NCBI GenBank assembly: GCA_002269645.1
Contig: NIVC01002129.1
Coordinates: 124,001-188,000, forward strand
Reading direction: 5' to 3'
Origin: Macrostomum lignano
Taxonomy: Eukaryota
Length of the DNA stretch: 64,000 bases
Shown: piece by piece, positions 1-42,311 of the stretch
Layout: each line of letters starts with the position of its first letter
How positions within the stretch are numbered: position 1 is the first letter of the stretch
Notes under the pieces: model-generated
What the model was told of the DNA's origin: nothing
The model's database searches: none
What the model saw: only the letters and a program-made list of their open reading frames with translations
Position numbers and translations under genes: made by a program

Positions 1-1
1 C

Positions 2-12990: not shown

Positions 12991-13824
12991 ATGGGACGAC
13001 GAAAAATTAATGTGGCAAAGACTTCCGCCAAGTTGTATCGTGGTTCTGCTCGAAGTCGAGCGAAAGTTATTCGTATCATTGCTACCTCAAAGCAGAGTTC
13101 CGCGTAAGTTATTAATGTTTGCAAGCTGCTTTTTGTTTGGATTACTTTTTCAGTTAAGAGAAAAAATATTTTTTCTATTTTCTTTTCATTTGCAGTAGTT
13201 CGTCACGCTGTCCAGACCCCGAATCCGATTTGGAGCACGAGGGTGCCGTTGAGCCCTTGGACGATGTTGAAGACGACGAAGATGATAATAATCAAGCTGA
13301 GCGGAGTCGTTTCAAAGAGTTTTGTGAGGCCGAAAGCGACCGCTGGGATGAGCTACTTTCCACAGGAACTCTTGCTGATGGTGTGGCAAAACACTATTCT
13401 CTGAAAAAAAGTGTCGTATGTGGCTCTGCAGATGGATTGTATCGGTGCGAGAAGTGTCACCTACTTTCGGTCTGTCTCGAGTGTCTCGAAGCGCGCCACT
13501 CGCACCGACCTCCGCATGCTGTCCAGCTGTGGAATGTAAGAAATGCAACTTAAATTCCATATACGAGCATAAGTCACATTCCCTTTGTTAATTTTAGAAT
13601 TGCAGTAAGGATGCATATATTAAAAATAACGTCTAAGTCGGCTTTTTACGTTTTAAAATTACTTGGATGTATGCGGCTACTGTACAAATTTATGCCTGTT
13701 CACTTACTATTAAAGAGAATAGTAGCACGCATATTTGATTCACAAACACTCTCAAGTGCGAGTCTGAGAAATATTTTATTATTTACTCAATTTTTCAGGG
13801 AAATTTTTATGAAGTTGTCCCGAC
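12991..13824 (+). pseudogene. Outer KDZ transposase, 5' exons (CxC cysteine cluster)
   Basis: Exon 1 12991-13103 (MGRRKINVAKTSAKLYRGSARSRAK..., phase 2). Exon 2 13196-13535 (...SRFKEFCEAESDRWDELL...YRCEKCHLLSVCLECLEARHSHRPPHAVQLWN|gtaag). Exon 3 starts at 13799 (GNFYEVVP). RCxxC...CxxC...H...P.H.V..WN is the recalled CxC2-type cluster associated with KDZ transposases. Confidence 0.8.
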
Positions 13825-14944
13825 CACCCGTATATACTCTTTTGGCCGTATATATCACGTCAAAAAGGGCCAGTTTTGGCCGGAATATCATGATATATGA
13901 TACGGTAGCACGGTATCATAATGCAAAAAGCTTATATCTTTTCGCGCAATTTCAAATGACTTATGCCTGCAGTTTCATTTATTGCTTGTAAGATATTTAA
14001 TTTCATTGTAAAATCTAACGGCGGTGGTACTTCACCAGCTCCTACTGGCTAGCTACTTTTCTCCATGTACACAGTGTATTACGTTTACGTTTTCTCCCTT
14101 TTAGCATGATGATGTACATTACTAGCTGTAGCTATTCATAATCATAACTCAGCTAGCTAGAAGTGTTGTCAATCATCAATTAAGTATATGGGACAATATC
14201 TGACTCTAAGCATATTATATATATATATTAGCTATTTTGAAATGCTATCTGAGTATATAATATAATATAATACTGTTATATATAAAAGGTATATAACTTA
14301 GATCTAGCCTCCAATCCAATCTGAATCAGATAAAGAAACTAGCCTAAAGATCATCTAGGCTGGTTTTTTGTATAGATAAAGTGGAAATGGAATTATTCTA
14401 TTTTAATAGACATTAAGGCTAAGGCCTACATTAAAATTGATTTTCAATCAATTAATTTTCAGATAAATACCTAGAATTAGGTACTAACTATACTCTATAG
14501 TATATTTGTTATTGTATTTTAAATTCTTTTTTTATATCTGTTACAGACTTGTTTCCTCCTTCTTCTGCTGACCTCTAGATGTCACCAATTGTCACAGACG
14601 TACTCGTTCTAACTGCAATTTCACCTTAAAGCCACTGAATCTTTACAGACTTTCTGGCTCTTATCACTAAACTGTCTATTTCTAGTAGTATCGGCTGCCC
14701 TAAACTATGACCTTTCTCTAATTTCACACGATTTCTTGGAAACCTTGTGATAGCGTGTAGTGCCCGAGCGGTAAGACACTGTCTAATCCCCTAGTTTTAG
14801 TCCGAAAGTCTAGCGTTTTCCGAGGATCAAGGGTGTCCAGCAGTAGCTAAACTATTCCTAATGCCTAATCCTTAATGTCTATTATTAGCCCGCACGGCTT
14901 TCTTAGGATCTATACGATCTCGATCTCCCTACTCAGGTTTCTAT

Positions 14945-15242
14945 GCTTGGTCTCCACGACCTCAAGTTTCCCTATTCAGATCCCTAATTCTTGGTCTCCA
15001 CGACCTCAAGTTTCCCTATTCAGATCCCTAATTCTTGGTCTCCACGACCTCAAGTTTCCCTATTCAGATCCCTAATTCTTGGTCTCCACGACCTCAAGTT
15101 TTCCTATTCAGATCCCTACTTCTTGGTCTCCACGACCTCAAGTTTCTCTATTCAGATCCCTACTTCTTGGTCTCCACGACCTCAAGTTTCCCTATTCAGA
15201 TCCCTACTTCTTGGTCTCCACGACCTCAAGTTTCCCTATTCA
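14945..15242 (+). repeat. 44-bp tandem repeat, ~7 copies
   Basis: Unit ttcttggtctccacgacctcaagtttccctattcagatcccta(a/c), head-to-tail with no spacers. Confidence 0.9.
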
Positions 15243-17611: not shown

Positions 17612-17637
17612 GAGAGAGAGAGAGAGAGAGAGAGAGA
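17612..17637 (+). repeat. (GA)n microsatellite
   Basis: Directly visible gagagaga run. Confidence 0.95.
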
Positions 17638-19444
17638 ATCTCCCCAGATTGGTTTATATTTCTACAGTTTATATGGAATCCTCAATGCTCATACTCAATT
17701 TCTCACCCTCCGACCAACATTAAAGGGCAAAGTTTGAAAGTTTTACTTAATTACTTATACGACTACGAGTAACAGTCAGCAAGTAATAGTGAAAACGAAA
17801 AAAATTAGATTAGTAGAGCACAAAACCGCACACAGAGCAAGTAAACCATTTTCATGGAGAATAAATTTGAGCTTATCGATCGTTCAGACTTTAAATGCTA
17901 AAGAATCTTAGACTCCCATGAAGCTAGCATTTGCGTAGGGGGGACTGCTTTTGCCTTCTTGCCTTGCCTTGCCTTTTGCCTGTTTTGTTTTCATTCTCTC
18001 TTTGTGTGATTCTGATTAAACTTTGTTTTGGCCACCCCTTCTATTTAACTGAGAAAAACCTTGGATAGATGAGCCCACCCACTGCCCGCACAGCTCCAGG
18101 CGTGAATTTTTCCGGCCATAAATCTTCTATACAACTAAATCTTGAATAAAAACTGAACTGGACTGCGCACCCAGGGCTTGGAATCTGTCAAAATGACAAT
18201 GGAAAGTCTCTCCGCCTGCAGCTATACTATAGATACTTTTTGGTCTGGGATAAATATTGTTTGCGATAGCTGTGCCCGGCCGCCACCTGGCTACCATTTC
18301 TATTCATCCAACTCTGATCCATTCAAAAAATTTTCCTTTGTTTACTTAAATTCTGCCATTCTGACGCACACACACAGCATTCGAATTCGCGCTGATATGA
18401 GGGGGCGCAGCCCACGCCGCCCACCACAGAGACTATGGGATGGGGCGCCAGAAAATCCGTCACGTATGCTCATGGATAGTAATTCTGAAAGCTAGGTTCT
18501 GGTCCTAGGGTTACTTTTTTGGTCTGTGCTTAAACGAGCAGCCTTATTTAATAATTACTCTAGGATAGCTTGTTGGACGGCGAGGTAAAGCGGTTATAAG
18601 ACAAGGTTAATTGTGCCAGAAATATTTACTGGCTTTAATTAACACACTTCTAGCAGAATATATAGCAGAATAGTGTAATGCAGTTGCATTGAATTTCCTG
18701 CAAGATTGTACTTTGCATGCAGCAGTCAGCATCGATAAAGATCAGAACAGACCAATAGAGAACTGTACCGGCCTATTCGTTTATTACTGCGCTTGCTGCG
18801 CAAAAATGTGGCGGTTGTAACTGTATGAGCTTTAGAATTTCAAAACAGTTAGTATTTACTTGCAAATTTTCGGTTTTACCCCATGACTTTAGAAAATTCT
18901 TTGCTGACTACTTAGGTATATAGAATACTAGAGAATGACGAATATCTAAGCAAAAATTAGTTGACAGAATGTTCGGCCATTTTTCGACCATGTTTCGACC
19001 AACTATGTTCCCTCTCTGAAAATTCGATGTTCTCCCTAGATTCGACAGAGAATCGACGTCGAATTTTACACCGGGAGGTTAGATAGTATATAATATTAAA
19101 TGTTTATAATAATATACTAGCTATTATACATGTTTCATTAAATAATAGTATAGCTAGAAATATTTAAATATTTAAATAACAATATTTAACTAGTCTTGGT
19201 TAAGTACAACTAGTTATATGGTTAGTGTAAATTTATACTATTAACAATAAAATATTTTATTTAATTATTGTTTTTAAAACCTTCCTAATTACTTGCATCC
19301 TTGTATTAGGCCTATTTCTTTGCCCTTCATATTATCCTATCTCTTTGTTGTTCTATCATGTTATTTATTTGCTCTAACTTTGCTTTCTCATTTCCTTGCT
19401 ATCCTACTTTCTCCTATTGCCTTACCGTCATTGCCACTATCTAT

Positions 19445-20130
19445 TTATGCTGTCCTACCCTCTATACAGCTCCACCCTTCCTGCTGTCCTACCCTCCATA
19501 CAGCTCCACCCTCCCTGCTGTCCTACCCTCCATACAGCTCTACCCTCCCTGCTGTCCTACCCTCCATACAGCTCCACCCTCCCTGCTGTCCTACCCTCCA
19601 TACAGCTCCACCCTCCCTGCTGTCCTACCCTCCATACAGCTCCACCCTCCCTGCTGTCCTACCCTCCATACAGCTCCACCCTCCCTGCTGTCCTACCCTC
19701 CATACAGCTCCACCCTCCCTGCTGTCCTACCCTCCATTCAGCTCCACCCTCCCTGCTGCAACCTTTCCTACTGTCAAACCCTCCCTGCTGTCCTACCCTC
19801 CATACAGCTCCACCCTCCCTGCTGTCCTACCCTCCATTCAGCTCCACCCTTCCTGCTGTCCTACCCTCCATTCAGCTCCACCTTCCCTGCTGTCCTACCC
19901 TCCATACAGCTCCACCCTCCCTGCTGTCCTACCCTCCATACAGCTCCACCCTCCCTGCTGTCCTACCCTCCATACAGCTCCACCCTCCCTGCTGTCCTAC
20001 CCTCCATTCAGCTCCACCCTCCCTGCTGCAACCTTCCCTACTGTCAAACCCTCCCTGCTGTCCTACCCTCCATACAGCTCCACCCTCCCTGCTGCAACCT
20101 TTCCTACTGTCAAACCCTCCCTGCTGCCCT
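19445..20130 (+). repeat. 34-bp minisatellite, left-arm copy
   Basis: Unit ctccctgctgtcctaccctccatacagctccacc, with an occasional variant gcaacctttcctactgtcaaacc. The same peptide string appears in all three frames, as expected for a period not divisible by 3. Confidence 0.95.
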
Positions 20131-21309
20131 ACCCTCTTTACTGTCCCACCCTCCTTGCTGTCCCACCTTTTTCCTGCCCCACCACACTCTTTCTCCTCTA
20201 CCACCTATATTTTTTCCTACCCTCCTTTTTCGCTATGCTGGAGTTTTTCTTCTTTCATGGTAAAAATTGTTGCTGTTTTAATATTTAAAAAAATCTGGTT
20301 TCAGAATGTCTTGGAAGGAGCATTGTCGCCAAAACTGCACTCCTGGTGTTAGTATTACGCGTGAGTGATACTTAGTGATCAAGGAATAGTGGAAGCATTT
20401 TTTCTACTAGAAGTATTTTTAAATCAGTCGTTTTCTTGCCGTTTTTAAAGTGTTGTTTGCCAGGCAGTGTACCCCTGAAATTTTTCTTCTCTTTTAGTAG
20501 CCATCCTATAGATGCTTCAATGGATCTCTATATGTAACTATAAATATTGCTATTTTGCACCGTGTCAAAATTCAAAGCAATCCTTTTCCTGCCTTTCAGA
20601 CCAGATTGACAGTTTGCGCGCATCTTACACAAACTTAGGAGATGCGGAGCGCATTTTTTTGCAAAATGCTGCTGCTCAACGAAAAAGTTGTAGCAAAGAT
20701 TTCACGGAAAGGAAGCTTCGAAAGGCTGCCAAGAAGCTTGTAAGAATGATAAAATGATTACAATTTTATTAAATAAGGAATGTTTCTTTGTTTTATTCAG
20801 ATGTTAAAGTATGGCTTCAGAAGTTAATTACTCTCCTTAAGCAATTTAGTTCTACGAGAGTATATGGAATTTCAGATTGATTCTGCTGACACAGCTGGTA
20901 TGCATGCCGTCGTGCTGCTTCACCCAAAAAGCGGCGGAGAAACCAGCGTCTTCGAGTCGGAGGACGTTATGGGGTTCTGCGAAAAGCGAAACATTGCTTC
21001 GGTAAGATATCCACCGCATATTCGTGCGGATTTTCGGAGCGAGTGTGTAATTTTTTTATGAATTTAAGAAAGAGGGTTTTACAGTGTGGTTTAGGATAAG
21101 CCATTCACGATATGTTGCTGAATGTGGCCACAACGTTTAACCTAACGAATTTTTTGGGGCCTTCAATCTGCGGTGGCAAATTCTGGGAGTGGCCCTACTA
21201 CCGCTGCTGGCCTTCGTATCGCGGTTAGCGAGCTTTTGCAAAGAAAATTTTGTAAGCATTTTTCTTATATGTGTTTGTGTTTTGCTGCTTTGCAATTCAG
21301 TTTGATGTA

Positions 21310-22850: not shown

Positions 22851-23229
22851 TATATAGTGGTGCATACTGAAATACTGAGTTGTTCAAAGATGTTAGTTCG
22901 TCATAACACATCATGAATGTATAAGAAGCTATCAATATGCCGGCCAGCACTGCTTCTTGAGTCATACTCGCGTTTTTACTTTTCCTTTCAGCGAAGGCTA
23001 TTAAAAACCGGCAGCTCCAATACTCCAATTACACACGCTTTGGTCGATGGATTAATTGGCCAACCGGTGTTCGGCAAGATTGTCACCCGCAGCGACTGTG
23101 CAAGAGGGATTTGATCTCTATCTGGTTAAAAAAAGAATCTCTTTTCTTTGAAAGATCAGCCGACCTACCATCAACCACTGTTGACCAGTCAAGAAGTGCG
23201 GTGTCGGCTGGCATCGCTGTCGGAAATTA

Positions 23230-23628
23230 TGCATCATCGACTGGTGCTGGTGCGGTGTCGGCCGGCATCGTCAGAAAGTCTGCATCATCGACTGGTGCTG
23301 GTGCGGTGTCGGCCGGCATCGTGAGAAAGTCTGCATCATCGACTGGTGCTGGTGCGGTGTCGGCCGGCATCGTGAGAAAGTCTGCATCATCGACTGGTGC
23401 TGGTGCGGTGTCGGCCGGCATCGTCAGAAAGTCTGCATCATCGACTGGTGCTGGTGCGGTGTCGGCCGGCATCGTCAGAAAGTCTGCATCATCGACTGGT
23501 GCTGGTGCGGTGTCGGCCGGCATCGTCAGAAAGTCTGCATCATCGACTGGTGCTGGTGCGGTGTCGGCCGGCATCGTCAGAAAGTCTGCATCATCAACTG
23601 GTGCTGGTGCGGTGTCGGCCGGCATCAA
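23230..23628 (+). repeat. 51-bp in-frame tandem repeat (~8 copies; SASSTGAGAVSAGIVRK)
   Basis: Unit gtcggccggcatcgtcagaaagtctgcatcatcgactggtgctggtgcggt; lies in an exon-like block after a pyrimidine-rich acceptor near 23156. Confidence 0.9.
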
Positions 23629-26379: not shown

Positions 26380-26830
26380 AAGGAAGCTAAGCTCTACGCA
26401 GGGGGGACAGCAGCACGGGATTTCCTGCAATTTCGAGCGTCGATCGTACGCTTGCCACCTGCGGAGATGCTCAGAGTCAGCCCAGTGCTTGACGCGGCCG
26501 AGTTAATCACCGAGGCGCAGGGGTGGGGGCCCCTGGGCCCAGAAGCCAGTCTTGCTGGGATGGAAACCATGACATCGTGGGCCGGGATCATTTGAGCTCC
26601 ACCTGGTTGTCCAGCGCAAGCCCATGGAGCCGGGCGTTGCAGTCCAGGACAGATCTGAAGTTGGTGGTGCTGCAGCAGACGGCCAGAAGGGCTGCTTGGC
26701 TGTCGGAGTGAAAAATAAATTTCTGACTGCAAGCTATAAGCAAGCTGCCTTCGATCATCTCTGCCACACAGGAGCTGATAGCAAGCACCTCGCTCTGAAA
26801 AACACTAGAATTGAGTCCCAGGTGTACCTG
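26380..26830 (-). pseudogene. Non-LTR retrotransposon RNase H remnant
   Basis: FIFHSDSQAALLAV...SVLDCNARLHGLALDNQVELK matches the recalled IFSDSQAALKAL..V..C...L..L...N.V.L.W motif of RNase H in I/R1/Loa-type LINEs; stops follow. Confidence 0.6.
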
Positions 26831-27131: not shown

Positions 27132-29810
27132 CGGGGTGTGAACTTAAGCTCCAGAATGGAGCTCGAATGAGGCCAGCAGACCAAACTGACTGTATCGATA
27201 ACTTGTTGGCCTACAAACTACAGACTACAAACGCTGACACATCCCACCTGAGTCTATTCTACTGGGTCCTGGGAAGAAATGGGATAAATGGGGATTTCAT
27301 GTGAACTTAAGGCTCATTTCTCATTAAGTTTATGATGAGGACGCACTTTTTCCCAAATCCCGCGCTAGCACATGGGCTTAAAACATACTTGCTTACTAAC
27401 GGTAGGCTATGGGCATTTTTTATCCGTTTTCTGCAAATTAACTTAAAATCTATACTAGATATAATGTCTGGCCATACTAGTAGTCATAATAACATAGGCA
27501 TTGCTTTTTGGGTCATAAATCATCGCTTTCGAAGTTGGTCTGACAGCCACCTGCGCCTCACTCAGTGTTGAGACGGGCGCCTGATGGTCTGAGAGGATGC
27601 GGGCGGTAGCTTTTTTCTCATCATTTTGACAGGCCATCAAGATTTATGAGGTCAGAGCCTATTGTTCGTGTTCACTCAAGCGTGTGACAGCTTTGACAGC
27701 TATGCGTTTTACCCCTAAAAGTACTTTGGGATTAGCGATTAGCAATTTCTCTTCATTATCTTCACTTTCTATTTAATAAGAGCTTTCTAATGTATATTTT
27801 TTCATTAATTTCTGTCAATCCTACGCGAAAAGTCATAAATCATTTTGTTGCGATTTTGATTGATTTATGGCCGCACTGTCATCTTTTTACGACCCTGTGG
27901 GAACTGATAGGATCTCTTGGTCACGTGATTCTGGGTAGCAACAAGCTTAGCCAATCAGAAAATTCGGCGCTCATTTTAACAAAACGGCTCAAGCCAATCA
28001 GAATCGACGTGTTCCATTATAACAAACTGCGGTCCAGTTGGCCGCTATTTAAACCGGTGTTTTTGGCCCGCTCGGACCCCAGACGCTTGCTCTCGGCCAG
28101 GAACTCTTTCCCCGGCCTGACCGTCGTTTCTTGATCCCCGGATTGCGACTTCCCTCCTCATCATCAAGGACGAGTCTTTCAGTCACCAGCAGCGAACATC
28201 AAAGTTAAGATCATCACCTGCTAGCTATCTGCGAAGACTGTGACAACATCATCCCGAGTCTACAGCTGCGAAGCATCGAGCCGATTCGGTCACTGTGGAT
28301 TACCTGGTCTCCGGCTGTTGAGTTTCTGATTGGTTGGGTGAGAGGCTACCTAGACTTGCTTGATTGGGTGATTCCTTATCTGTCCCCTATTTTAGTAGCT
28401 GGATTAGGCGCACACTTTTGCTCATTTTGTTCAGTAGTGCTGTTACTGAGGCAGAAATCATTCAATAATACTGCTAGTAGTCTGAAACTCCTATTCGATC
28501 TGAAGTCTGAAGTGATCTAAGGAGAAGGTTAAATCTAACAGTTATTTTTATCGGTTTTATTTCTTTGCTCGCCGATGGCTCAGATGAGTAGCTAATCTAG
28601 TAGGCGCCGGTCACAGTGGACCAATGGCAAGGCAGTTCTCAGTCGATCCATCAATCAAACCAGTGAGCAAAACTGCCAGAAGTGCAGAATCGGCGCCAGA
28701 GATGTACTTTGTGCACTCTAGGTTAGCCAAGCGGCTCGGGTAATGAATCATGCGGTCTCTGAAGCTCGAGTTAGTCTATCATCAGCGCTATGAGAGGCTA
28801 GTTGGCGTGTTGAAGGCCAACATATCTTCGTATTTAGCAATTTAATAGTACATGTAGCTACCCCATAGACTCGCCACTGCAAGAATCCCCTGCACAAGTC
28901 CTCTCTGTACCTGCATGGCCAATGCGATCAAGTCCCAGCAGTGTCCCTTATCATCGGCTATGACTTCGAGATTGACAGCTAAAAGACACTAGTTGGCAGG
29001 TAAGTGCAAAGCCCCTTCTAGTCGGAAGCCCGATTTCGAGAGTCCCAGTGTGGTGAGCCAGGACACGTACGGGCTGGTGGCAGCGAGTTAGCTTAGTCTG
29101 CGGATTAGCTAATTTCTACCTTCAAAATTCTCCCTGCTTGTCTCTCACTGTCCCTCTCCTAGCTATAGGACCTAGACTGCTCGCCACACGATCAAGCTAC
29201 CATCGGGCTGACCATCTGACAGGAGTGGGGGGCCAGGACTCTAATTGATTTATTTCTGAGGCCTGAGGCCCGAAGGCTTCCTCACCAGGGGCCTGAAAGG
29301 TCGAAACCCATCATTTATCTCAAGGATGCGCAGTGTTATGCAGCCCTTAAGCCATGTTAAGGATAGTGATTATTTTGGAAACTAAGAAGCAAGTCAATGG
29401 CCCTCACATTTCAGTTTTTGGTTTAGGCTGTGACTTTTTTATGGTTTAATTGTCCAAGACCATAAGGTGCCATCATCGCCACTCAGGCTGGCGAATGGGG
29501 AAGCGGTTGCCCCCCCCCCCACCTTAGGAGGCGACCCGCAAAAAATTGTTCGGGAGGACCAATCGAATTTTTGCGAAAATCCTAGCCCGCCTTACGCCAC
29601 CCTCCGTCTGCTAATCCTAGCTAATGCATTCTGGAGCTTAAGTTCACATGAAATCCCATTTATCCCATTTCTTCCCCCAGGACCCAGTAGAATAGACTCA
29701 GGTGGGATGTGTCAGCGTTTGTAGTCATCTGGGCCGAGAGTTATCGATTCCAGTCGGTTTGTTCTGCTGGCCTAATTCGAGCTCTATTCTGGAGCTTAAG
29801 TTCACATCCC
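27132..29810. repeat. Pair of ~180-bp inverted repeats (27132-27313 and 29625-29810) 2.3 kb apart
   Basis: ggggtgtgaacttaagctccagaat...cgctgacacatcccacctgagtctattctactgggtcctggg..gaagaaatgggataaatgggatttcatgtgaacttaag occurs reverse-complemented at 29625-29810. Confidence 0.8.
27905..28060 (+). promoter_or_regulatory. Promoter-like cluster (E-box, two CCAAT boxes, TATA-like)
   Basis: tcacgtga (~27921), agccaatcag twice (~27949, ~27992), tatttaaa (~28047). No downstream ORF identified. Confidence 0.3.
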
Positions 29811-32674
29811 TTTTCATGCGCCAAATCAATCGTTTTGGGGTGCAGTATATACATGTATGGCTCGGAAAGAAAGAACTGGAGAAAGAACTTGAGTAGTGGA
29901 ACACTCGTATAAAGGAAACTCCAGTATTGGAACCTTGCAGACTCCAATACTAGCTCGTAGATTGATGGTCGATTTTAGCGTGCAGTTTGACTTGACTTAG
30001 CTTGACTTAGCTGCAGGGTGGTCCGTAGACACAGCGGGGAGGCGAGGGTCGCCCATTCCGCTAGTCCCTGAAGGCCCGCAGACAGGCAGAGGCGTGGGGC
30101 CGGTCAGGCTGGTCCGCCGGTCCGTCCTGCAGCGTGATCTTCCGTTGGGAAGAAACTGGCTCGTCTGATCTAGTCGCCCGAAGGAACTGGATGAGCCGTG
30201 AGATGCTGTCGGGCTGGCAGACCTCGTCGATGGATGGGTTCGGCCCGAGGTAGCGTAGCCGGTCTCTGTTAAAGAAAGGGCAGTGACAAACAAAGTGCTG
30301 AGCATCTTCATTGTCGCACTCGCAAAAAGGGTAGCGTGCAGTTTAGTGCGACACTGCTCAGCGGCTTGCGTAGTTTTGATTAGTTGCAAGTTGCAGGACA
30401 GCCGGTTTACTTGCAGAATCTTTACTGTCAGCAGGTTAAAATTGATAACGTCTAAATTTGACAAGTGCACCTAGGCCGGGGGGATACAAATTTTTGGCAT
30501 TTTGCAGAGTGGATTTCTCGCCTATGCGACCAACATTTTCTGATAGAAATTTCGACCCCCTGAGTCGATTGGCACCGGTCCCAGAGCGCCAGAAGGTCGT
30601 CCAGTAGAGTTATTTGCACTTTTCTGGTGCCAAAACCGAAACTTCAGCATTGGAGCATAAGAAAACTCCAGCATTGGAGCGAGACTGGAGCTGATATAAC
30701 TCCAGCATTGGAGCCAGCATTTTTTCCTTTGGTACTTACTGGCTCCATCGTCCCGATGCTCCTCATGCTGCTGACAACATGCGGATGGCGTGTGGCGAAG
30801 CTTGAAGTTATAGTCGTGAAGTTGAAGAGGCAACGCCTAGCTGCGTCCGCGTGCCCGGAACCCCTGCAGCTAAGTCAAGTAACCCTCTACCACTGTACAC
30901 AACTCTCAAATCTGCGCAATAAATACATGTGCATGTAGCTAGTGCATGTGCACTTGCCAAGCACAGAGAAGGCAAAACTTCTGCCCGATATTGTGCTTCT
31001 CAATTCAAATGCGCATTTAAGAAATTAATAACATGCAATCCGTGTTTTCCGTTCGTTATTTTCAGCAGTACAGCATTTTTGCCGATCCCCCTCATAATTT
31101 GTGCCCCTAATTACTCATGTTGGCTTCCCAAACTTGGACCGCCCCCTCCCAAAATGAAATTCTAGATCCGCCACTTATCATACATGATAAGACTGACTGA
31201 ATTTACTATTACTAATATACCTATACTGATTATAGATCATTTGTCTCAATCGGATGGAAACAACTTACATATGTAAATGTCCATGTATCAGGAAAGTCAT
31301 GGCTATTTAAAAAGTGGCAGGATGTCAGGCTACGGTAGCACGAGACTTTTCCACAGAGGCTTTTCCACCGAGATTTCCTCTCATTTTTAACCAACAGGTG
31401 CTGCAGGCTGCAGAGACAGAGGGTGAGGAGAAAGGGAGGTCAAGGGGGGCAGACAAACTATTGACTACTGTAAAGTAAAATCATATACTTTATACCTCTC
31501 GTCCTATGGCTCTACCTCCCACTATTCTTTGTGACCGTCGTGTGACCATATTTGTGTCATCAAAAGAGAATTCGATAAAACAGGAATGTTTCAGGACAGG
31601 ACAGAGTGAATTATCATAAAAAGCATAGGTAAAATCAGTGAAGTATGTTTTATTTTAGAGGCACATGTTTATAATATACAGTTAAGTATATACTCGTAAA
31701 ACTGTACGTTGAAAAAAGACAATGAAAAACGATTGTCAAAAAAACGCGCTGCATAGTTCTCTCAAAGTTTGCCTAGCAAAACTCGACAGGGAGGGGGGGG
31801 GCGGCAAAAAACTGGCATTATAGAGCGGGAGAGAGAGCGTCAGAATTTGTGATGAATTTATCCTACGCTGCTCTAGAGCGTTAGTTACGGGTTTCCGATA
31901 TACACGTAAGATATCTGTGTCCACAGTGGACCGAAAAACATGACAGTTTCATCAATCCAACAGGATATTGACAATACTAAATAATAGTATTACTACTGTA
32001 CTATTTAAAGGGAAGGAAAGTTGCCAAAAATTATCATAGAACTGTAACATTTCCCGAATTCACCCGTACTTAAAAGAAAAGGATTACTTTTAACCTCAGT
32101 TGCTATATTTTTCGATACATTTTAAATGCAAACTTACACAGGAAAGTACATATTGGATACCACACATAACGATATTTATTAAAAATAGCATTACGTACAG
32201 TACTGTAGTACTTGCAGCAGTAGTAAAAATTTAGCATTACCCGTACGAGTATTTTAAGGACATAACGAGACTGTTAAATCAAGAACGGTACAAAAGCATA
32301 ATTTCAAAGAATAAAGAGACCGTGCGTTAAAATGTTATATACAATCGTGCTTGATCCTACGTGAATTAGAGTTCCTACGCCTTGTACAACTCATACATAG
32401 CTAAAGTAGACGCAAAGAATCACTTCACGCAATAGCAGAGTGGATCGCGACAAAAAGTCCAAAGTAAGACAATCGGAAGACATTCTTAAGCACAGGTTTC
32501 GCATTGAAATCATTGTGAGTGTCCCGTATCCAAGATATGGCATATATGGTAACCACCTATCGAATTTTTTTATAGGCAACAACTTTTGTTTATAAAATTG
32601 AAAACTATTGAAAAAGCAATATATTCCTCGAAAACTAGATTGAAACACCTTGCTCAGTCGCTCTGGGTCCTAGA

Positions 32675-35600
32675 TCAGTCAGATTCATACTCGGATTCGC
32701 TCTCGGATTTGCTTTCGAATTCGCTCTCGAAATCGCTTTCCGGCGATGAAGATGGTGAACTCGATAGGTCGTTACCGGAACCACTGGACGCTGAAATAAA
32801 TCCAGGGTAGAAAGTTCATAAGTTTATTATTTATTCATTAAGTTTATTCTTAAGTCATAGATCATTTGCAAAAATTAAGTTTGTAAGTCTGAATTTCACA
32901 GTCTGAAAATGTGAACATGCTTTATGGGCTTTACCACGTGCTGTCTGCAGGCAGGAAATGCTGGTTGTAGTGGAATGAACTGCTTGACATTCTGAAGGGA
33001 AGGCTGCTAAGTGAGCTTCGAGTATCTGAAGAATGCCATTCTCTCTCATCGACAGTGCGGCAGCCAATGGACCATCTCGAGCTTCTACTTCCGTGCGCGC
33101 TTTGCGAGCCGCATCATTGAGAAATTGCAAAGTCCTCTCTGCTTCCGCAGCGACCAGACGCGACTCCTCCTGGATACGAAGGTACAGGTCTCGAAGCTTC
33201 ACAGCATGTACTTTTTGAGCTTGGTTTCTGATGCTCACAAGTTCCTCGAAGCCGAGTGATTCAGGCTTAATGAAGTGGCCTGGATTTAGTTGGTCAGTAG
33301 GATTCGCACTGTTAAAACTCGAGTAGATCGCTTTTGTTTTGGCAAGCAATTTGTTAAGAGAAACTCGAAGAAGCTTTTGCATGCGCTGTCCACGTTCTGT
33401 CCCCACATGCTCAATCAAATACCGGCGCTCGCAGGCAATTCCATAGAGCTTCTGAATGGCTTTAGATTTGGGCGAAGATGCTTTGGAATGAGCAGTTAGT
33501 ATAGCGAAAAGCTCCTGTCTCCAACCGGCTGCAGCGCAGAGAAAATCTTCCAGACTCACTAAAGAGGTCAGTTTGCAAGGTAAATCATTAATTCCTTAAA
33601 GGGTATCCAGACCCTCTATATTAACTACTCGCAGAGTAAACTCATTTAAATTTCTATTTTAAGTGCACCGTCAAAATCTTACTTAAAGAATTATTCTGGA
33701 GTCGAAAAGTCGAAAGCTCTTCTTGGAACTGCTGCATTGCTTTTCTCTCCACGGCTTTTCGGCCGATAAGCCAGGTAGCTAAAGTGAGATTTAAAATAAA
33801 GTGCATCAGTTAAGTTCTTATTCGTAGTTTTTTTTATCGCTTTTGTTGGGTTTCCACTATTTTGCGCAATTTCTACTGTATGTATAGCACTATGACTTAC
33901 TGATCTTTGTGATACACTGGAAGTTTATAGTATTCGCTAGATAGTTCAAAAATTCGCGACGGTTATCGTGGGCCATCTCTTACAACTGAGGGCCAAAACG
34001 CCGAAGCGTTGCCCAGACGAGCTCTACACTCTCACCATCTGTCAGGCCGACTGATTGAACAGAGCGTATACCATGTGAGAGTTGACAGCGTAGAACATGC
34101 CCATAGGAATGAAAAGCCGGAATGGCGAAAGATAGCCTTGAGTCGTTGAAGCGACCGGTTAGTTTACATCCGATGTCGTAGGATACGACGATTGGCACCA
34201 TTGGCGGAACATCCCGAAGCATTTGAGCAATCATTGTAGTGGAATAGTTTAGTCTAAAGATAAATTCAATTGCAAAAATCACGAAATGGTGCTGTAAGTT
34301 TTGAAATTTGGGAATATTTCCATATACTAAAAATGGTGTCGGTAGGTAGGTATGTGGGTAGGTATAGGTATGCTATCGATTTTAGATTGGTTCTAAAAAC
34401 AATTTACCGTTCACCAGTCGATGTCATATCGGCCAAATAAGTTATTGCAGAATGTCTGCAGGAACCAGAGAATGCACCAAAAACATCTAGCTTAGCGCTA
34501 TCTGAAGAAGTCGACAGACCTTGGCCTCTTCCACCTGCATTCCAGTTTGCACAGTGTCCTGTAGAGGGCGGACACTTCTCAGTGAGGTCGACGTCAAGAA
34601 AAAAGCCAGAATGAGCTGGTAGAGTGGCATTTCCAGCAGTTTTTCGATGGCGAAGACCAAAGCAGTCATCCATCAATAAAAAAACTGGCTCTTCACTAGC
34701 CGCATTCGTGTTGACCTGAATTTTGTGTAGAAGTCACGTTAATTTTTTATTACGCAGATTGCACAGGAAATAGAAAAGGAAGCATTTTGTAAAATACTCG
34801 TAAATTAAAAATAATGTTACCAAATAGCAAGCGGGGCATGATGCTTTCTCTTCCCACCGAAAGTTTTGAAGCACACGTCGAAATGATTTAAACGCGCCAG
34901 TCAAATTTAAGGCTCTAAAAATATCGAGCTTAAAAGTGGTACAGAAGTAAGAAATACACTGAAATACTCGTGTCGATAATAAGAAATTGTCAGTCAGGGG
35001 CAATGGTGCCTGAAAAACTTACTGATGGGGATTTGCGCATCCAAATTGACTCACGATAACGCTTAAAAGCCCAACAGAGAGATGATAAGGATGCAGTGCA
35101 GTTGCAATTAAGCGAGTCAAGTAGTAGTAGAAGGTCGACTGCAATAGCCGTCAGCATTTTAGAACATTCTGGTCTGGCTTGCAAAGGCCAAAATCCATGT
35201 ACCAGAAGTGCAGAATGGTACGTTGCACAGGAGCAAACTTCTAAATCTACTTGCATCTCACTTCCTAAATTGTGTTAAAAACATGGAAGCTTTTACCATC
35301 TAAATATACTAAATTAATATACTAAAAATGAAAGCAAAGATAGAGTTGTTTATAAGGCAAAATTTAATGTCCAAATAATTTTACCATCGTCTGTGATGAC
35401 AGTAACAGGAAATACGCCAGCTATTGTTGAATTGCAGCCACACATTCGAGCCAATCGCACATTCGGTTTGACAGCCTCAAAGAATTTGCCCTTGTATAAG
35501 GAGGTACATTTAAAAAGGTATAAAAATGTATGAACTTGAAATTTTAAGAATTATGCAAAATCATTCGTGAATGCCTTTACATTCCAATGGTGTACAATAT

Positions 35601-35947
35601 GAGGTGGCTTGTGTGCATGCTTTATTTCTAGACAGGCAAAACACACTGACAGCAGGTGGCACTTTGTACAGCGGAACATGCTGTCGGACGAGATACCCCA
35701 GACAACACATGGGTGCCGATTGAAGTAGGTAGCAAAATCCTTGAGAAGAGTACCAGACTCAAACAAGTCGCTCCAGGCAGCAGATTCGTCGTCGCAAAAC
35801 TGCTTGAAACGACTGGGTGGCTTTTTCGCGCGGCTACTTGGGGGCATCGTGCAATCGAATAGATTAGGATGGTCCGTGCCTTCAGGGATATCTTCCCAAT
35901 CTTCATCGTGGACATCCGTACGGTCATTATTATTATGGACTTCGTCA
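32675..35947 (-). pseudogene. Inner KDZ transposase: spliced CxC + KDZ gene with a nonsense codon
   Basis: Exons give ...FRCTKCHLLSVCFACLEIKHAHKPPHIVHHWN | GKFFEAVKPNVRLARMCGCNSTIAGVFPVTVITDD | SEMQVDLEVCSCATYHSALLVHGFWP... | LDIFRAL...SCPACYL | ...FLLMDDCFGLRHR...GSCRH...TGER | LNYS...VSYDIGCKL...IPAFHSYGHVLRCQ...GLTDGESVELVW... and then an acidic SESE tail ending TGA at 32675. D, CxH, GE, YDIxC, H..H..C and DGExxExxW are the recalled KDZ signatures. In-frame TAA at 33980-33982 (GPQL*EMAHDNRR versus GPQVKEMAQDNRR in the outer copy). Confidence 0.9.
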
Positions 35948-36004: not shown

Positions 36005-37075
36005 AGCAAACTGTATAGAGGGTAGGACAGCAGGGAGGGTGGAGCTGTATGGAGGGTAGGACAGCAGGAAGGGTGAAGCTGTATGGAGGGTAGGACAGCA
36101 GGGAGGGTGGAGCTGTATGGAGGGTAGGACAGCAGGAAGGGTGAAGCTGAATGGAGGGTAGGACAGCAGGAAGGGTGAAGCTGTATGGAGGGTAGGACAG
36201 CAGGGAGGGTGGAGCTGTATGGAGGGTAGGACAGCAGGGAGGGTGGAGCTGAATGGAGGGTAGGACAGCAGGGATCGGGAGGAGCTGTATGGAGGGTAGG
36301 ACAGCAGGGATCGGGAGGAGCTGTATGGAGGGTAGGACAGCAGGGAGGGTGAAGCTGAATGGAGGGTAGGACAGCAGGGAGTGTTTGACAGTAGGAAAGG
36401 TTGCAGCAGGAAGGGTGAAGCTGTATGGAGGGTAGGACAGCAGGGAGGGTGAAGCTGTATGGAGGGTAGGACAGCAGGGAGGGTGGAGCTGTATAGAGGG
36501 TAGGACAGCAGGGAGGGTGGAGCTGTATGGAGGGTAGGACAGCAGGGAGGGTGGAGCTGTATGGAGGGTAGGACAGCAGGGAGGGTGGAGCTGAATGGAG
36601 GGTAGGACAGCAGGAAGGGTGAAGCTGTATGGAGGGTAGGACAGCAGGGAGGGTGGAGCTGTATGGAGGGTAGGACAGCAGGAAGGGTGAAGCTGAATGG
36701 AGGGTAGGACAGCAGGAAGGGTGAAGCTGTATGGAGGGTAGGACAGCAGGGAGGGTGGAGCTGTATAGAGGGTAGGACAGCAGGGAGGGTGGAGCTGAAT
36801 GGAGGGTAGGACAGCAGGGATCGGGAGGAGCTGTATGGAGGGTAGGACAGCAGGGATCGGGAGGAGCTGTATGGAGGGTAGGACAGCAGGGATCGGGAGG
36901 AGCTGTATGGAGGGTAGGACAGCAGGAAGGGTGAAGCTGAATGGAGGGTAGGACAGCAGGGAGGGTTTGACAGTAGGAAAGGTTGCAGCAGGAAGGGTGA
37001 AGCTGTATGGAGGGTAGGACAGCAGGGAGTGGGGAACTGTATGGAGGGTAAGACAACATGGAGGGTAGGACAGTA
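36005..37075 (-). repeat. 34-bp minisatellite, right-arm copy (inverted relative to 19445-20130)
   Basis: ggtggagctgtatggagggtaggacagcagggag is the reverse complement of the left-arm unit, including the same gtttgacagtaggaaaggttgc variant. Confidence 0.95.
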
Positions 37076-37630
37076 GGGAGGGTATGGAGTAGGACAGGAG
37101 GGAGAGTAGGATAGCAGGGATTGACATAGATAGTAGAGCAACAAGGAGATAGGGTGGGATAGCAGGGAAGGTGGAACATTAGGATTCAGGAAAGGGGTGG
37201 GGCAATGAGGTGGAGCAGCAGGGTAGAAGATAAGAGGGGCAACAAGGAGGGCATTGCAGGGAGGGTAGGATAGCATGAAAGTGGAATATAAGGATAAAAG
37301 GGTAGGATAGCACTGAAAATAAAACACAATATAGCAATGACAGAACAAGCAAGATGGGATAACAAGGTAGGATAACAAGGTGGGTAGTACCAGCAAAATA
37401 GATAGTGGCAATGAGAGAGGGTAAAGCAATAGAAGAGAAAGTAAAATACCAAAGAAATGGGAAAACAAAGTTAAAGCAATAATGCAATAACTTGAATAAG
37501 GTAGGACAGCCAAAAAAGATTGGATAATATGAAAGGCAAGAAAATGGTCACAATACAATGATACAAATAAGTAGCAAAGAGGTTTAAAGAAACTAATATT
37601 TTATTGTCAATAATAGTTAGGCCTAGCTAT

Positions 37631-37805
37631 CATGGGTGGCGGGAGCTTGTGGCACAGGGGGCATGTGCCCCCCAGAAAATGAGTCCATATGGTAATTTTT
37701 AGTGCTTTTTCTTATTTCAGATTCTAATTAACTTATAAAGGTACCTGTGCCCCCTTTGTCCTGTGCCTGGTGCCCCCCCTCAAATATTAGGCTCCACCGC
37801 CTTTG
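37631..37805. mobile_element. hAT-type MITE (175 bp)
   Basis: 8-bp TSD CTAGCTAT at 37623-37630 and 37806-37813; imperfect ends CATGGGTGGCGGGAG / CTCCACCGCCTTTG. The 8-bp TSD is the basis for the hAT call. Confidence 0.78.
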
Positions 37806-37999: not shown

Positions 38000-38605
38000 G
38001 GCAGTGCTTATTTAGCCGGCACCGGTCAAATAAGCGCGTCACTATTTAGCCGGCAGTCCTGCCCCATTGCCGGTCAAATAAGCGCGTCACTATTTATCTG
38101 GCAGGCCTGCCCAACTGCCGGTCAAATAAGCCCGTCACTATTTAGCCGGCAGTCCTGCCCCAGTCCTGCTGCCGGTCAAATAAGCCCGTCACTATTTAGC
38201 CGGCAGTCCTGCCCCACTGCCGGTCAAATTAATAAGCTATAACCCATTCATCCAAGCGATCCTTGCCCTCTCGTGTGCTACAGACAGTATACATGTACAG
38301 TATGGCCAGGGCCCACAACTAGGACGTATTAAACATTCGCCGACACTTATTCAGACACTTCTACAGACACTTTAGTTTCTGTCGTACGAATCGTAGGAAC
38401 AAGCATTAAATTTGTTTATTGCCGGCTAAATAGTGACGAGCTTATTTGACCGGCAGTGGGGCAGGACTGCCGGCTAAATAGTGATGGGCTTATTTGACCA
38501 GCAGTGGGGCAGGACTGCCGGCTAAATAGTGACGGGCTTATTTGACCGGTGCCGGCTAAATAGTAGCGAACTTATTCGACCGGTGCCGGCTAAATAAGCA
38601 CTGCC
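38000..38605. mobile_element. Mutator-type foldback MITE (606 bp)
   Basis: 9-bp TSD TTGATAGAA at 37991-37999 and 38606-38614; ends GGCAGTGCTTATTTAGCCGGC / GCCGGCTAAATAAGCACTGCC; arms built from ~45-bp subrepeats. Confidence 0.85.
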
Positions 38606-39312
38606 TTGATAGAAAATTAATTATTATAATGTAAATATAGGCCTGGCCTATTGTCTATTAAAAACTAATAATTCCATTTCCATATCAATTCATATATACA
38701 AAGAACTATATCTAAGTTACCTATAACGTAATAAAATATACTCATTTTTAAGAGACTAAGAGTATTATACTATATTATATATCCTTGTTCACTCACTTAG
38801 CATTTCAATAATACAATATAGTTAATTTAATATGCCTAGTTATAGACATAGTCCCATAGACCTAATTGATGATTAGACAACACTTCTAGCTAGCTAGTTA
38901 ATGAATATGATTAATGAATAGATAGCTAGTAATTTTAGGGGCCTAAAGATAAAGCCAGGACCAGGTTGTATAGGCTGTACATCACTATGCTAAAACTCAA
39001 GAGAGAAAAAATAAACTGTGTACATGGAGACGAGTAGCTAGGCTTAGAGCTGGTAAAGTAGCACAGTTAGATTCTACTTATGGGGTATAGAATCATTCTA
39101 CAATGAAATTAAATACCCTACAACTAACTGCAACTCTACTTAAGCGAGCTAGCTCAATATGAACCCGAGAGTCATTTGAAATTGCGCGAAAGGGATAGGC
39201 TTTTTGTATTATGATACCGTGCTACCGTATCATATAGCATGATATTTCGGCCAAAACTGGCCCCTTTTGACGTGATATATACGGCCAAAAGTGTATATAC
39301 GGCTGTCCCGAC

Positions 39313-42311
39313 AGAGGTGTGCCTTTTGCGTCAGTGTGGGTGTACCGGCATATCTAGTATATTTCCGGTAACTGTTATCACCGAGGAAGGTATGTGTTGG
39401 CTTGCGAATGCATAAATAAACTGCTTTATAAGACCATAAAAGATCTCAGCCGGCGAGGGAGATGCTGTTCGTAATCTATGTTATACTGTAAACATATTTG
39501 TTGTTGTCTAGTACCTCTTTATCCTTCTGGAAATTTTGGAGCTAATTAGTAATAATTGAATGGGGGTAGTACCCTTATTATAAAACTATAGTTTTTATTG
39601 TATATTTCGCATCTACCGCCAGGCTACTTCCCTTAAATTTTTACGCGAAAGCTTATCACAAATGTAATTGGCTCATTTACAACCTTTACAAATTGAATTA
39701 TAGTGTTAAGTATGGCTAATTGTTTCTTCTTTCCAGTCAACGAGATTCCTATTAAAGTGGAGGTTTGCTCCTGCACTACCTACCATGAAGCACTGCTGAC
39801 CCACGGTTTCTGGCCAATCCAAGCAAGACCTGAAAACGCAATTAAGGCTGTTGACGGCCGTGGCCATTGGTTTGCTTCTTCTTATTGACTGTCTCAACTC
39901 CCAATGTACAGCCTCACTCTCCTCACTGTGTGCTGCACTGAGGCACTTTCGGAATTCAATGTGGATACCCACAACCTTGACGGTATGTTTTGTGGCTATT
40001 GTTTGGGTCATGTCATGAACTTTTATTTTCTTGTCTGAAGAGCCCCACTTTTGAATTCAGGTTGACCTTTTCCGAACACTCAACGTCAATGGATCATTTC
40101 GTGCTTTTCGAAGCGTTCTTCAGAGCTTACGATGGGGACAGAACGCGTCATGTCCGGCGTGTCATGTGGTACGGATTGTCTAATACTAACTCTGTGCTCC
40201 TTCATTTTGCTTCGTGTCTTGATTTTCCGTCATTGTCGTAGAAATAGTCATCAGTACAGCATTTGTAAAGCCGAATCTACTTTATGGTTCTGTAAAACTA
40301 CTAATTACAGTCTTTACCATAGCAACACACAGTTAGTTGATGGCAGTGCCCAACTCTATTTGTAGAAAAATGAAACATCCGATAATCCGTCACCAGTGTT
40401 TCTTATGATGGATGCGTGCTTTGGCATCCGCCATCGCAGGAACGCCGGTAAAGCTACTATGCCACCCGCTTCTGGCTTCTTTATCGACGTAGACCACAGC
40501 AATGGTGTTCAGCCTTCTGAGGGGCACTGCGCCAACTGGAGCGCCGGCGGTCGAGGCCAGGGTCTTACCAGCGGAGCTGATCGCAACAAATTGGATGTGT
40601 ACGGTTTATTTTGTGGCTCATGCCCACACTCGTTCATCAGGTACATGGAAGATGTGACTACTCCTGGCGAGCGGTAATTCCTTTCAGTGCTTTGCTGCGA
40701 GTACTAGTTTTCCTTTCTGATTTTTGAACGCCAGTTATTTTGCTTTTTTACAGCCTCAACTACAGCGAGTGCATGGTTCAGCAGATGCTGCGCGATATTC
40801 CTCCCCACGTTCCAATAATCGTATCTTACGATATAAGTTGCAAATTGGCTGGTCGATTCTGCGATCCACGATTAACTTTTGTCTTGCCGGCATTGCACGT
40901 TTATGGTCACGTTCTTCGTTGTCAGTTGTTGTTCGGCATTCGTGCCACCGAGTCTGTGGGCCTGATAGATGGCGAGAGCGTTGAGCGCATTTGGCCGCCA
41001 TTCCGCAGATTTGGACCTCAAGTAAAGGAGATGGCACAGGATAATCGTCGCAATTTTTTGAATTACGTCGCTGACACTATGAACTTCGCACGCATCATGT
41101 CGATCAGTTAGTATTTTATTTGTGTGAATTAATTCGTATGTCGTTGTGATATAGTATGTTTATATTTATTATTTTTTTGTATATTATCAATCTGAATGAA
41201 AAATTCATTTCCATCTATCCATTTTCAGCTGCTTGGTTGCAAAGTCGCCGAAAGGTTGATGAGATAGCATTCTTGCGCTTTGAGACAGAGTTCGCAAAGT
41301 TTTTGGAAGAAAGCAAAAGCACTCGTGAGTTTTTATGAAAAAAATGTAGACGCTAATACTGTACAAAAAATTTCATTACTAGACAGCACTTTTGAAACAT
41401 TAAATGAGGTTGCAGTGAAAAAAATCGAAGTAGTTTTTTTTACTTATTAGATTTGAGAGCGCGTTTCCATCCACCTTTTTAAGCAGGAGCTGCACTTTTC
41501 CTTTTCAGTAACTGTTGACGAATTCCTACAGAAGGCAGGAGAGTCGCGGGAGACAGTTTTGTCTTCCTTGAAGGCTAAACCCACAGCAGCAACCTCAAAG
41601 AAAGCTGAAGCCATCCGCAGCTTGTATCGTGTTGCATGCGAGCGCCAGTACCTAATTGACCATGCTGCAACTGAGCGTGGCCAGCGAATGAACCGACTGC
41701 TGACTGTAACGAACCAAAAGCTTCTGAAAAAGACCAGGAGCATTGTAGCGAAATTTAACGGTCTGCACCAGAGTGACCAACTTGACTATCAAGATTTCAT
41801 TTCCCCGAATTCTGAAGGATTTCAGCAGCTGCTGCACATTAATGGGGATATCGCACAGAAAGCTCGAGCTGTTAAGCTGCGAGACTTGTACTTCCGCTGT
41901 AAAGAGGAGTCACAACGAGTAGCAGCCGAAGTGAGGCGAGCATCATTTTTTTCGTTGATGCGCTACAAGTAACCCGCTCGCAGATTCAAAAGGCCAGAGG
42001 ATTACCGATTTCAACAATGCTTCACATGCGTGAAAATGGCATTTGTCGTTTAGTAAGATCTCATCTGTCAGCCTTTCCGTCCGAGTTCCCGATTCTCCAT
42101 GAAGCAGCTAATACCAGATGCGACAGTGAAATTATTGAATCAAGTGAGTATTTGCATTTATTAGCCAGTCTTGCAAATTCCGATTCTGTTTTTACATTAT
42201 ACGTAAAACTCAAAACACTTTTTTCTAGTGCCCCTTTCGGACTTCAGTAAGGACAGTGAAAGCTCTCAGGCAACAACAATATTATCAGATACCGACGAAG
42301 ACTATATCTAG
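39313..42311 (+). pseudogene. Outer KDZ transposase, 3' exons (frameshifted)
   Basis: 39313-39389 completes exon 3 (TEVCLLRQCGCTGISSIFPVTVITEE). From 39737: VNEIPIKVEVCSCTTYHEALLTHGFWP, with a frameshift near 39845. Then VDLFRTL..SCPACHV; FLMMDACFGIRHRR..GSCPH..PGER; VSYDISCKL..LPALHVYGHVLRCQ..GLIDGESVERIW; ACERQYLIDHAATERGQRM; acidic tail ending near 42311. Colinear exon-for-exon with 32675-35947. Confidence 0.9.

Follow-up and report, generated by a model that had tools for sequence, protein, structure and literature searches.

Evidence for a KDZ transposon nested within an exon of a related KDZ transposase gene in the flatworm Macrostomum lignano

A 64,000 nt stretch of the genome of the flatworm Macrostomum lignano (assembly GCA_002269645.1, contig NIVC01002129.1, positions 124,001 to 188,000 of the forward strand; hereafter the window, numbered from its first base) carries two transposase genes of the KDZ type, one of which lies within an exon of the other. 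We put at roughly 90 % the probability that this arrangement reflects nested cut-and-paste transposition, in which a 25,481 bp KDZ element at 13825-39305 (the inner element, with termini 5'-CAC...CTG-3' and its transposase gene on the minus strand) was inserted into an exon of a related KDZ transposase gene on the plus strand (the outer gene). Cut-and-paste transposition of the DDE type is recognized by defined ends, staggered cleavage of the target and repair that duplicates it, and the standard proof that one element is nested in another is a flanking duplication together with restoration of the host sequence when the insert is removed. Here the insertion lies in a coding exon of a transposase gene, so that an exact check at the protein level is possible.

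Restoration of the interrupted exon

The interrupted exon of the outer gene survives in two plus-strand pieces. The left piece, 26 nt at 13799-13824 with the sequence ggaaatttttatgaagttgtcccgac, encodes GNFYEVVP(T) and is directly preceded by ...tttttcag, while the right piece, 77 nt at 39313-39389 (agaggtgtgcc...accgaggaag), encodes a CGC (C-x-C) motif and ends in G, directly followed by gtatgt. Joining the two, as had been proposed in the preliminary description of this locus, gives a 103 nt exon bounded by AG and GT whose translation is GNFYEVVPTEVCLLRQCGCTGISSIFPVTVITEE. The counterpart named in that description, the exon of the inner gene that encodes GKFFEAVKPNVRLARMCGCNSTIAGVFPVTVITDD, was recovered as well (35490-35386, minus strand, likewise between AG and GT), and the joined peptide matches it with E=8.6e-7 (tblastn, within the window). 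The rejoined outer exon of 103 nt and the inner exon of 106 nt are equal in phase and one codon apart, and the difference falls at a one-residue gap in the protein alignment. At the left junction the sequence runs ...tttttcag|GGAAATTTTTATGAAGTTGTCCCGAC, then CACCCGTATATACTC..., and at the right junction ...GTGTATATACGGCTG, then TCCCGAC AGAGGTGTGCC...GAGGAAG|gtatgt; the outer site free of the block is predicted to read ...GAAGTTGTCCCGACAGAGGTG....

Searched against databases, the rebuilt outer protein matched the M. lignano proteins A0A1I8HMS9 and A0A1I8GP41, the second of which carries the stretch whole (WNGSCFETVTSPVRIARRNACDCSAVHSRRVLGVTEEGE), and the stretch is uninterrupted in 13 further KDZ proteins, A0A1I8GP41 and 12 others, with flatworm, amphioxus and scallop proteins among them. 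In the alignment of these 13 relatives with the two genes of the window the junction (P|T) lies in a gap-free, conserved segment. Even the 26 nt of the left piece specify nine residues with recognizable homology, of the form G.(F/V)(Y/F)..V..; in five other members of the family the segments aligned with GNFYEVVPT read GKFFEAVKP, GSCFETVTS, GSVYVHVPT and GSFYETQAT.

Termini and target-site duplication of the inner element

The direct repeat around the block is 9 bp long, TGTCCCGAC (13816-13824 and 39304-39312). A three-way alignment shows that three termini in the window start with CA(C/G)CCGTATATAC: CACCCGTATATACAG at 10406, the left end of the outer element considered below; CACCCGTATATACTC at 13825, the inner left end; and CAGCCGTATATACAC at 39305, the inner right end read as its reverse complement. 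Because all three start with CA, the true target-site duplication is, judging from the aligned termini, most likely the 7 bp sequence TCCCGAC (13818-13824 on the left, where the direct repeat reaches 9 bp from 13816, and 39306-39312 on the right), and not 8 or 9 bp. The additional TG of the 9 bp repeat on the left is a 2 bp coincidence. The tips of the inner element are CACCCG...CGGCTG, that is, 5'-CA..TG-3' ends. An 8 bp reading (GTCCCGAC) fits arithmetically, but the right end would then be ...GGCT as against CAC... on the left, so that the termini would be asymmetric. The restored sequence is identical whether 7, 8 or 9 bp are taken as duplicated.

Sites resembling CCGTATATAC number 8, as against 1.9 expected, and the subterminal words ATATCACG, ATATCATGAT and GATACGGT are found in a cluster solely at the three termini. 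The outer left end and the inner left end have an exact 13-mer, CACCCGTATATAC, in common. The two ends of the inner element are inverted copies of each other, with 127 of the 137 terminal bases identical (~93 %), and gapped homology between the left end and the reverse complement of the right continues to ~650 bp in a local alignment. These inverted ends and the flanking repeat were set independently of the exon, and their agreement with its restoration bears out the earlier claim that the restored exon confirms the boundaries of the element.

The two transposase genes

Both gene models were built by hand from splice sites. Against the Pfam KDZ profile PF18758 (cut-off 26.6 bits) the inner protein scores 117.6 bits (E=8.5e-34) and the outer protein 96.5 bits (E=2.5e-27), with the profile matched nearly whole (3-217 of 217). 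Since both genes match this profile, and one lies inside the other's exon in opposite orientation, the nesting of KDZ within KDZ that was first suggested for this locus is upheld. The two proteins are ~52 % identical, and a tblastn comparison of the open frames shows the genes to be colinear, the outer on the plus strand and the inner on the minus strand within the block.

The inner gene occupies 32675-35947 on the minus strand, and its nine exons lie at 35947-35581, 35490-35385, 35264-35023, 34928-34821, 34715-34408, 34253-33901, 33778-33683, 33558-32935 and 32790 to approximately 32675. The first mapped exon of the outer gene (13196-13535, plus strand) encodes a cluster of cysteine and histidine residues resembling a B-box (...CGSADGLYRCEKCHLLSVCLECLEARHSHRPPH...WN); it is 44.6 % identical to inner 35883-35581 (E=1e-25) and 100 % identical to residues 83-143 of A0A1I8HMS9. 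Its acceptor is in phase 1, so that at least one exon further upstream is absent from the model; no conserved coding exon was found between either gene's terminus and its first mapped exon. Beyond the split exon the outer gene continues on the plus strand from 39737 to 42311, with exons at 39737-39982, 40061-40168, 40366-40673, 40754-41106, 41229-41324, 41509-42143 and 42229-42311, the last of which contains the stop codon.

Every mapped intron has its place and phase in common between the two genes, and each exon lies between an AG and a GT. The first exons measure 340 nt (outer) and 367 nt (inner), the second, split in the outer gene, 103 and 106 nt, and the third 246 (242+4) and 242 nt, while the fourth to seventh are of the same length in both genes (108, 308, 353 and 96 nt). 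The colinearity of the genes, together with the 97-100 % identity, exon by exon, between A0A1I8HMS9 and the outer exons that flank the insertion on either side, sustains the view of the preliminary description that a single gene extends across the insertion.

Neither gene copy, as it stands, can encode a full transposase. In the inner gene an in-frame TAA occurs at 33980-33982 (minus strand), where the outer gene, A0A1I8HMS9 and A0A1I8GP41 have a codon for lysine. In the outer gene a 4 nt insertion, ATTA at 39841-39844 (plus strand), shifts the frame and accounts for the third exon being 246 rather than 242 nt long, whereas A0A1I8HMS9 continues in frame as ENARLLTAVAIG; a run of seven T residues at 41946-41952 (plus strand) introduces a second frameshift, which could be a homopolymer sequencing error. 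A 16 nt insertion in the third outer exon was also considered and was rejected, because A0A1I8HMS9 and the exon lengths show 4 nt. The acidic residues in MD(D/A)CFG (D), SYDI.CK (D) and DGES (E) are invariant in the inner protein, the outer protein, A0A1I8HMS9 and A0A1I8GP41, and are candidate catalytic positions of the RNase H-like core expected of a DDE transposase.

Cysteine motifs and the site of interruption

The cluster encoded by the outer exon at 13.2-13.5 kb has the form C-x8-C-x2-C-x6-C-x2-C-x5-H-x-H, and relatives with such a cluster are named B-box-type in UniProt; the label 'CxC exon' originally given to this exon therefore does not stand. The C-x-C motif sits instead in the split exon, as CGC, with CDC, CSC, CNC or CHC in M. 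lignano relatives, and its column is conserved across the M. lignano families. The outer protein has a weak match to the Pfam profile CxC1 over residues 150-215 (20 bits, below the cut-off of 26.9, E=8e-4), which covers the exon after the split one, and the inner protein has no match to CxC1. Relatives from amphioxus, fish and scallop pass CxC1 or CxC2 at the corresponding position, immediately before the KDZ domain. With the C-x-C motif in the split exon and the CxC1 match in the next, the insertion would have cut the cysteine-cluster domain itself.

Arms and interior of the inner element

A more sensitive search shows the arms of the inner element to be colinear inverted copies over ~3.3 kb, tandem arrays included. 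The terminal part of the left arm (13825-14507, plus strand) faces that of the right arm (38612-39305, minus strand); it matches the right end at ~93 % identity over its outermost 137 bp, and with gaps further in. Further pairings join 14443-14507 with 37999-37934, 19093-19157 with 37887-37825, and the 34 bp tandem array of the left arm at 19236-20167 (plus strand) with its inverted counterpart at 37615-36011. This right-arm segment (36011-37615, minus strand), which comprises a 34 bp array reaching to 37084 and the adjoining arm, lies directly upstream of the inner gene. Approximately 4.6 kb between 14507 and 19093, including a 44 bp tandem array at 14946-15242, are present in the left arm and have no equivalent in the right, an asymmetry that could reflect either a secondary insertion or a deletion from the right arm. 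The right arm alone contains, at 38022-38549, two facing blocks of 48 bp repeats (38022-38229 and 38420-38549); their unit is CCGGTCAAATAAGCCCGTCACTATTTAGCCGGCAGTCCTGCCCCACTG, and the opposite orientation of the blocks makes a large palindrome.

The tandem arrays identified inside the inner element with Tandem Repeats Finder (TRF) have periods of 44, 34 and 51 bp. Two fragments of the type found in long interspersed nuclear elements (LINEs) also lie in the interior, both on the minus strand: an RNase H-like fragment at 26591-26830 (...VFQSEVLAI...), assigned by eye and with no Pfam match, and a C-terminal Cys/His fragment at 30064-30342 (CECDNEDAQHFVCHCPFF...), which is 54.5 % identical to the LINE-like N-terminus of A0A1I8HMS9. 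Part of the 25.5 kb is probably secondary material. The 53 open reading frames (ORFs) of at least 65 aa that lie outside tandem arrays in the interior (14.4-32.8 kb) gave zero Pfam matches; nor was a TET/JBP dioxygenase or other cargo gene found among them, a search in which short exons could be missed. Rfam and tRNA scans returned no Rfam families and no tRNAs. An inverted pair of segments, 27129-27315 and 29634-29814, was considered as a possible nested element and rejected, as it is without a flanking duplication.

The outer element

The left (5') terminus assigned to the outer element lies at 10406-10490 on the plus strand (CACCCGTATATACAGTTTTG...ATATCACG...ATATCATGATA), and was recognized from the 13-mer, the alignment of termini and the subterminal words. 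The first mapped outer exon follows 2.8 kb downstream of it, and the gene-proximal end of the inner element is 3.4 kb upstream of the inner gene, in like orientation. Between the outer terminus and that exon TRF detects a CT-rich tandem array of 12-13 bp units (11964-12791, plus strand), the counterpart of the inner 34 bp array; the outer array and the inner arrays (36011-37084, and also 19448-20167) have in common a CCCTCC(C)TGCT core and their position relative to the gene, and may be transposase-binding repeats, promoter elements or simple repeats of the arms. This parallel layout of terminus, array and exon argues that the outer gene belongs to a related transposon.

No right end of the outer element was found in the window, whether by blastn-short of 1-13196 against the opposite strand of 42300-64000, with the terminal 10-mer allowing one mismatch, or with the subterminal words; it either lies beyond 64 kb or has been lost. 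A distant right end would not be odd, given that 19 kb of the inner element lie downstream of its gene. The repeat at 10138-10358 was considered as a boundary of the outer element and rejected: its copies at 44054-44274 and 2408-2505 are direct and not inverted, and it is a member of another repeat family. This copy stops ~50 bp before the outer terminus.

The outer gene might instead be a domesticated, KDZ-derived gene of the host, in which case a functional gene would have been interrupted. The unlocated right end and the existence of a UniProt protein model, A0A1I8HMS9, would accord with this. That model is, however, a patchy automatic one fused to a LINE tail, the outer gene has two further frameshifts, and 2.8 kb upstream, in the orientation to be expected, there is a terminus that bears the family motif and leads into an order of array and exon like that of the inner element; we consider domestication very improbable.

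Relatives elsewhere in M. lignano and in other animals

A0A1I8HMS9 joins the exon at 13.2 kb to those at 39.7-42.3 kb, so that elsewhere the outer gene has been modelled as one, and as its sequence continues through the site of the 4 nt insertion it must come from another copy, allele or assembly. The model skips exactly the broken exon, passing from the middle of the 13.2 kb exon to the exon at 39737, which hints weakly that the interruption may be present in its source too. Ahead of the KDZ exons, and fused to them, residues 1-82 of A0A1I8HMS9 form a LINE-type C-terminal Cys/His motif; no such sequence occurs upstream of 13196 in the window, and the fragment at 30064-30342 inside the inner element is 54 % identical to this N-terminal part. 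The A0A1I8HMS9 model probably combines pieces of repeats into a chimaera.

A0A1I8GP41 is 46 % identical to the outer protein; for neither it nor A0A1I8HMS9 is there a recorded genomic locus. An exhaustive phmmer search found 1,952 relatives of it at E<=1e-3, the best of them further M. lignano proteins, followed by proteins of amphioxus, characid fish and scallop; the nearest proteins from outside the flatworms are ~31-35 % identical. Another M. lignano KDZ family (PAA87534.1 and PAA90160.1) is represented in GCA_002269645.1 by a ~23 kb repeat unit, present with >99 % identity at two differently flanked loci, L001 (5002-28258) and L002 (5004-27322), and large KDZ units therefore seem usual in the M. 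lignano genome. The left end of this family is CATCAGTGTCACAATCACG, a 19 bp tandem array follows its Cys/His exon, and its right end is masked by an assembly gap (a run of N at L001 28259). Neither a copy of the CCGTATATAC motif nor an insertion of the inner family was found in L001 or L002. A segment of ~170 bp, 80 % identical, is common to this family and to positions 37637-37801 of the window.

The same comparisons bear on whether the 25.5 kb might have been wrongly placed through collapse or mis-joining of repeats during assembly. The region is highly repetitive, and M. lignano assemblies are gapped in such elements, as the run of N in L001 illustrates; a mis-join would not, though, be expected to give a perfect duplication exactly outside matched inverted termini, and the broken exon is exactly what is left out of A0A1I8HMS9, whose source we take to be another annotation of the species, albeit this last is a weak argument. 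We regard an assembly artefact as exceedingly improbable.

Comparison with known KDZ elements

According to a recent survey, KDZ elements have been well characterized as complete transposons only in the case of Zisupton and, from that survey onwards, of the fungal Kyakuja and Dileera (PMC12730594). Fungal Kyakuja elements make 7 bp duplications and have CA..TG termini without terminal inverted repeats, and Zisupton and Dileera have an 8 bp duplication (Kojima, 2025; PMC12730594). The inner element resembles Kyakuja in its KDZ domain, its 5'-CA..TG-3' ends and, on the most economical reading, its 7 bp duplication, but differs in having ~137 bp of near-identical inverted ends with kilobase-scale arm homology and in residing in a flatworm rather than a fungus. 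Unlike in the fungal KDZ elements that carry TET/JBP genes, no such gene was found among the 53 interior ORFs. With Zisupton, known from fish and other eukaryotes, and with Dileera it shares a KDZ transposase, and with Zisupton also terminal inverted repeats and an animal host, the nearest relatives outside Macrostomum being those of fish, amphioxus and scallop; the published duplication in these two is however 8 bp, a length that would here make the termini asymmetric. Judged by these features, the inner element is best assigned at the level of KDZ only.

The other M. lignano KDZ families (L001 and L002; A0A1I8GP41), with ~40-46 % protein identity, resemble the genes of the window in that their proteins run from a Cys/His cluster through a C-x-C stretch to the KDZ domain. 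The L001 and L002 family also has a unit of comparable scale (~23 kb), with tandem arrays in or beside the gene, but differs in its left terminus, CATCAGTGTCAC.... As in other nests of transposons, a younger element interrupts an older one, and the present case differs from nests in general in that host and guest belong to one superfamily, share a terminal 13-mer and meet in a coding exon.

Other repeats in the window

Three direct copies of a repeat family unrelated to KDZ lie at 2408-3527, 10138-10358 and 44054-46850. The family has a shared head of ~100-220 bp, then a 23 bp array, of unit GCGTCATGTAAAAAATCATAGAA and with 63 copies at 44602-46043, and then TTAGGG-like (telomere-type) repeats at 3346-3527 and 46210-46850. 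Further tandem arrays occur at 6023-6775, 7650-8170, 9611-10127, 23196-23626 and 48415-48696; their units are a 151 bp unit, TC-rich units of 14/21 bp, a GC-rich 9 bp unit, a 51 bp unit and a 54 bp unit, and they give rise to long spurious open frames on several strands.

A long open frame on the minus strand at 50236-52268 (494 aa, with a 190 aa frame upstream) has 728 database relatives across animals, the best an M. lignano protein with 62 % identity. Some of these relatives contain PF02992 (Transposase_21) or PF13960 (DUF4218), domains of EnSpm/CACTA-type transposase families, and the frame itself has no Pfam match. Short minus-strand frames at 3977-4285 and 47648-47920 resemble it by eye. 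At 58696-63998 (minus strand) lie pol ORFs that look, from the order of their domains, to be of Ty3/gypsy type and that apparently come from two adjacent or nested elements: 61782-63545 encodes RNase H and integrase, 60254-61795 encodes reverse transcriptase and RNase H, and 58696-59643 has weak, sub-threshold integrase-like matches. The last of these ORFs runs off the end of the window.

This surrounding sequence is relevant to the choice of target. Insertion into the outer gene could have been directed or preferential, through recognition of KDZ transposase genes by their sequence or chromatin, as in competition between related elements, or through local hopping. The insertion struck a related transposase in the homologous exon, within the C-x-C segment, and the terminal 13-mer is common to both elements, observations that fit with such a preference but do not constitute a test of it. 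We are dealing, however, with a single event, in a window so dense with an EnSpm-like ORF, Ty3-like pol ORFs and LINE-like fragments that a transposon as target is unsurprising, and L001 and L002, two copies of another M. lignano KDZ family, are without the inner-family motif or insertion; preferential insertion appears improbable. The simplest account would be one of chance, in a repeat-dense region where an insertion would be costless to the host.

Origin and significance of the nested insertion

We propose that the KDZ transposon at 13825-39305 would have integrated, in antisense orientation, into the second mapped exon of the related KDZ transposase gene, under the action of its own transposase or that of a sister copy, and that staggered cleavage followed by repair would have duplicated the 7 bp target TCCCGAC. 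By splitting the 103 nt exon that encodes the C-x-C motif, the insertion would have inactivated the outer transposase. Decay of both copies may have come afterwards, or partly before, with the 4 nt insertion and the T-run frameshift in the outer gene and one nonsense codon in the inner gene, and the non-coding interior of the inner element would have gained or lost material, as the LINE-like fragments, the 4.6 kb asymmetry and the tandem arrays suggest. The end motif shared with the outer left end at 10406 would indicate two families that probably have related end recognition. The sequence itself shows the boundaries, a flanking duplication, the inverted arms, the kinship and common exon structure of the two genes and their disabling mutations; we infer the 7 bp length of the duplication, as against 8 or 9 bp, a DDE-type mechanism, this order of events and movement of the whole 25.5 kb as a single unit.

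Several points weigh against this account. There is a single insertion, so that three termini are the basis both for the length of the duplication (7, 8 or 9 bp) and for the end motif; neither a second copy of either family nor an empty site was retrieved, and no further inner-family copies were found among database proteins. With no right end in the window, the outer gene is tied to a complete mobile element at one side only. Lastly, zero Pfam coding domains were found in the interior ORFs, and one copy cannot show how much of the 25.5 kb travelled with the element.

The last of these points leads to the alternative of a composite origin, in which a smaller element, or two copies or solo ends, came to enclose a region that was never one moving unit. 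An interior with LINE-like fragments, several unrelated tandem arrays, the 4.6 kb asymmetry and no recognized coding domains would accord with such an origin. The duplication nevertheless pairs the outermost ends, which argues that those ends integrated together; the ~3.3 kb colinear inverted arms enclose a single transposase gene; and the ~23 kb unit of the other M. lignano KDZ family suggests that large size is normal. We therefore think a composite origin unlikely, and later internal growth by secondary insertions, which is likely, is compatible with nested transposition.

Through the shared terminal motif the two families could conceivably cross-mobilize, and the inner family might insert preferentially into KDZ transposase genes, although we hold this to be improbable; if true, KDZ-targeted insertion would represent a transposon that disables its competitors or homes to kindred sequence. 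The nesting itself is an ordinary case of a transposon within a transposon, cleanly documented, and is of interest chiefly because it proves the boundaries from within. What the locus delimits is a previously undescribed flatworm KDZ element, with its ends, duplication, arms, 25.5 kb extent and nine-exon gene, and with it a second family, that of the outer gene, having the same terminal motif. Both should be of use in the annotation of Macrostomum repeats, and may serve as a point of departure for the question whether animals have end chemistry of the Kyakuja type.

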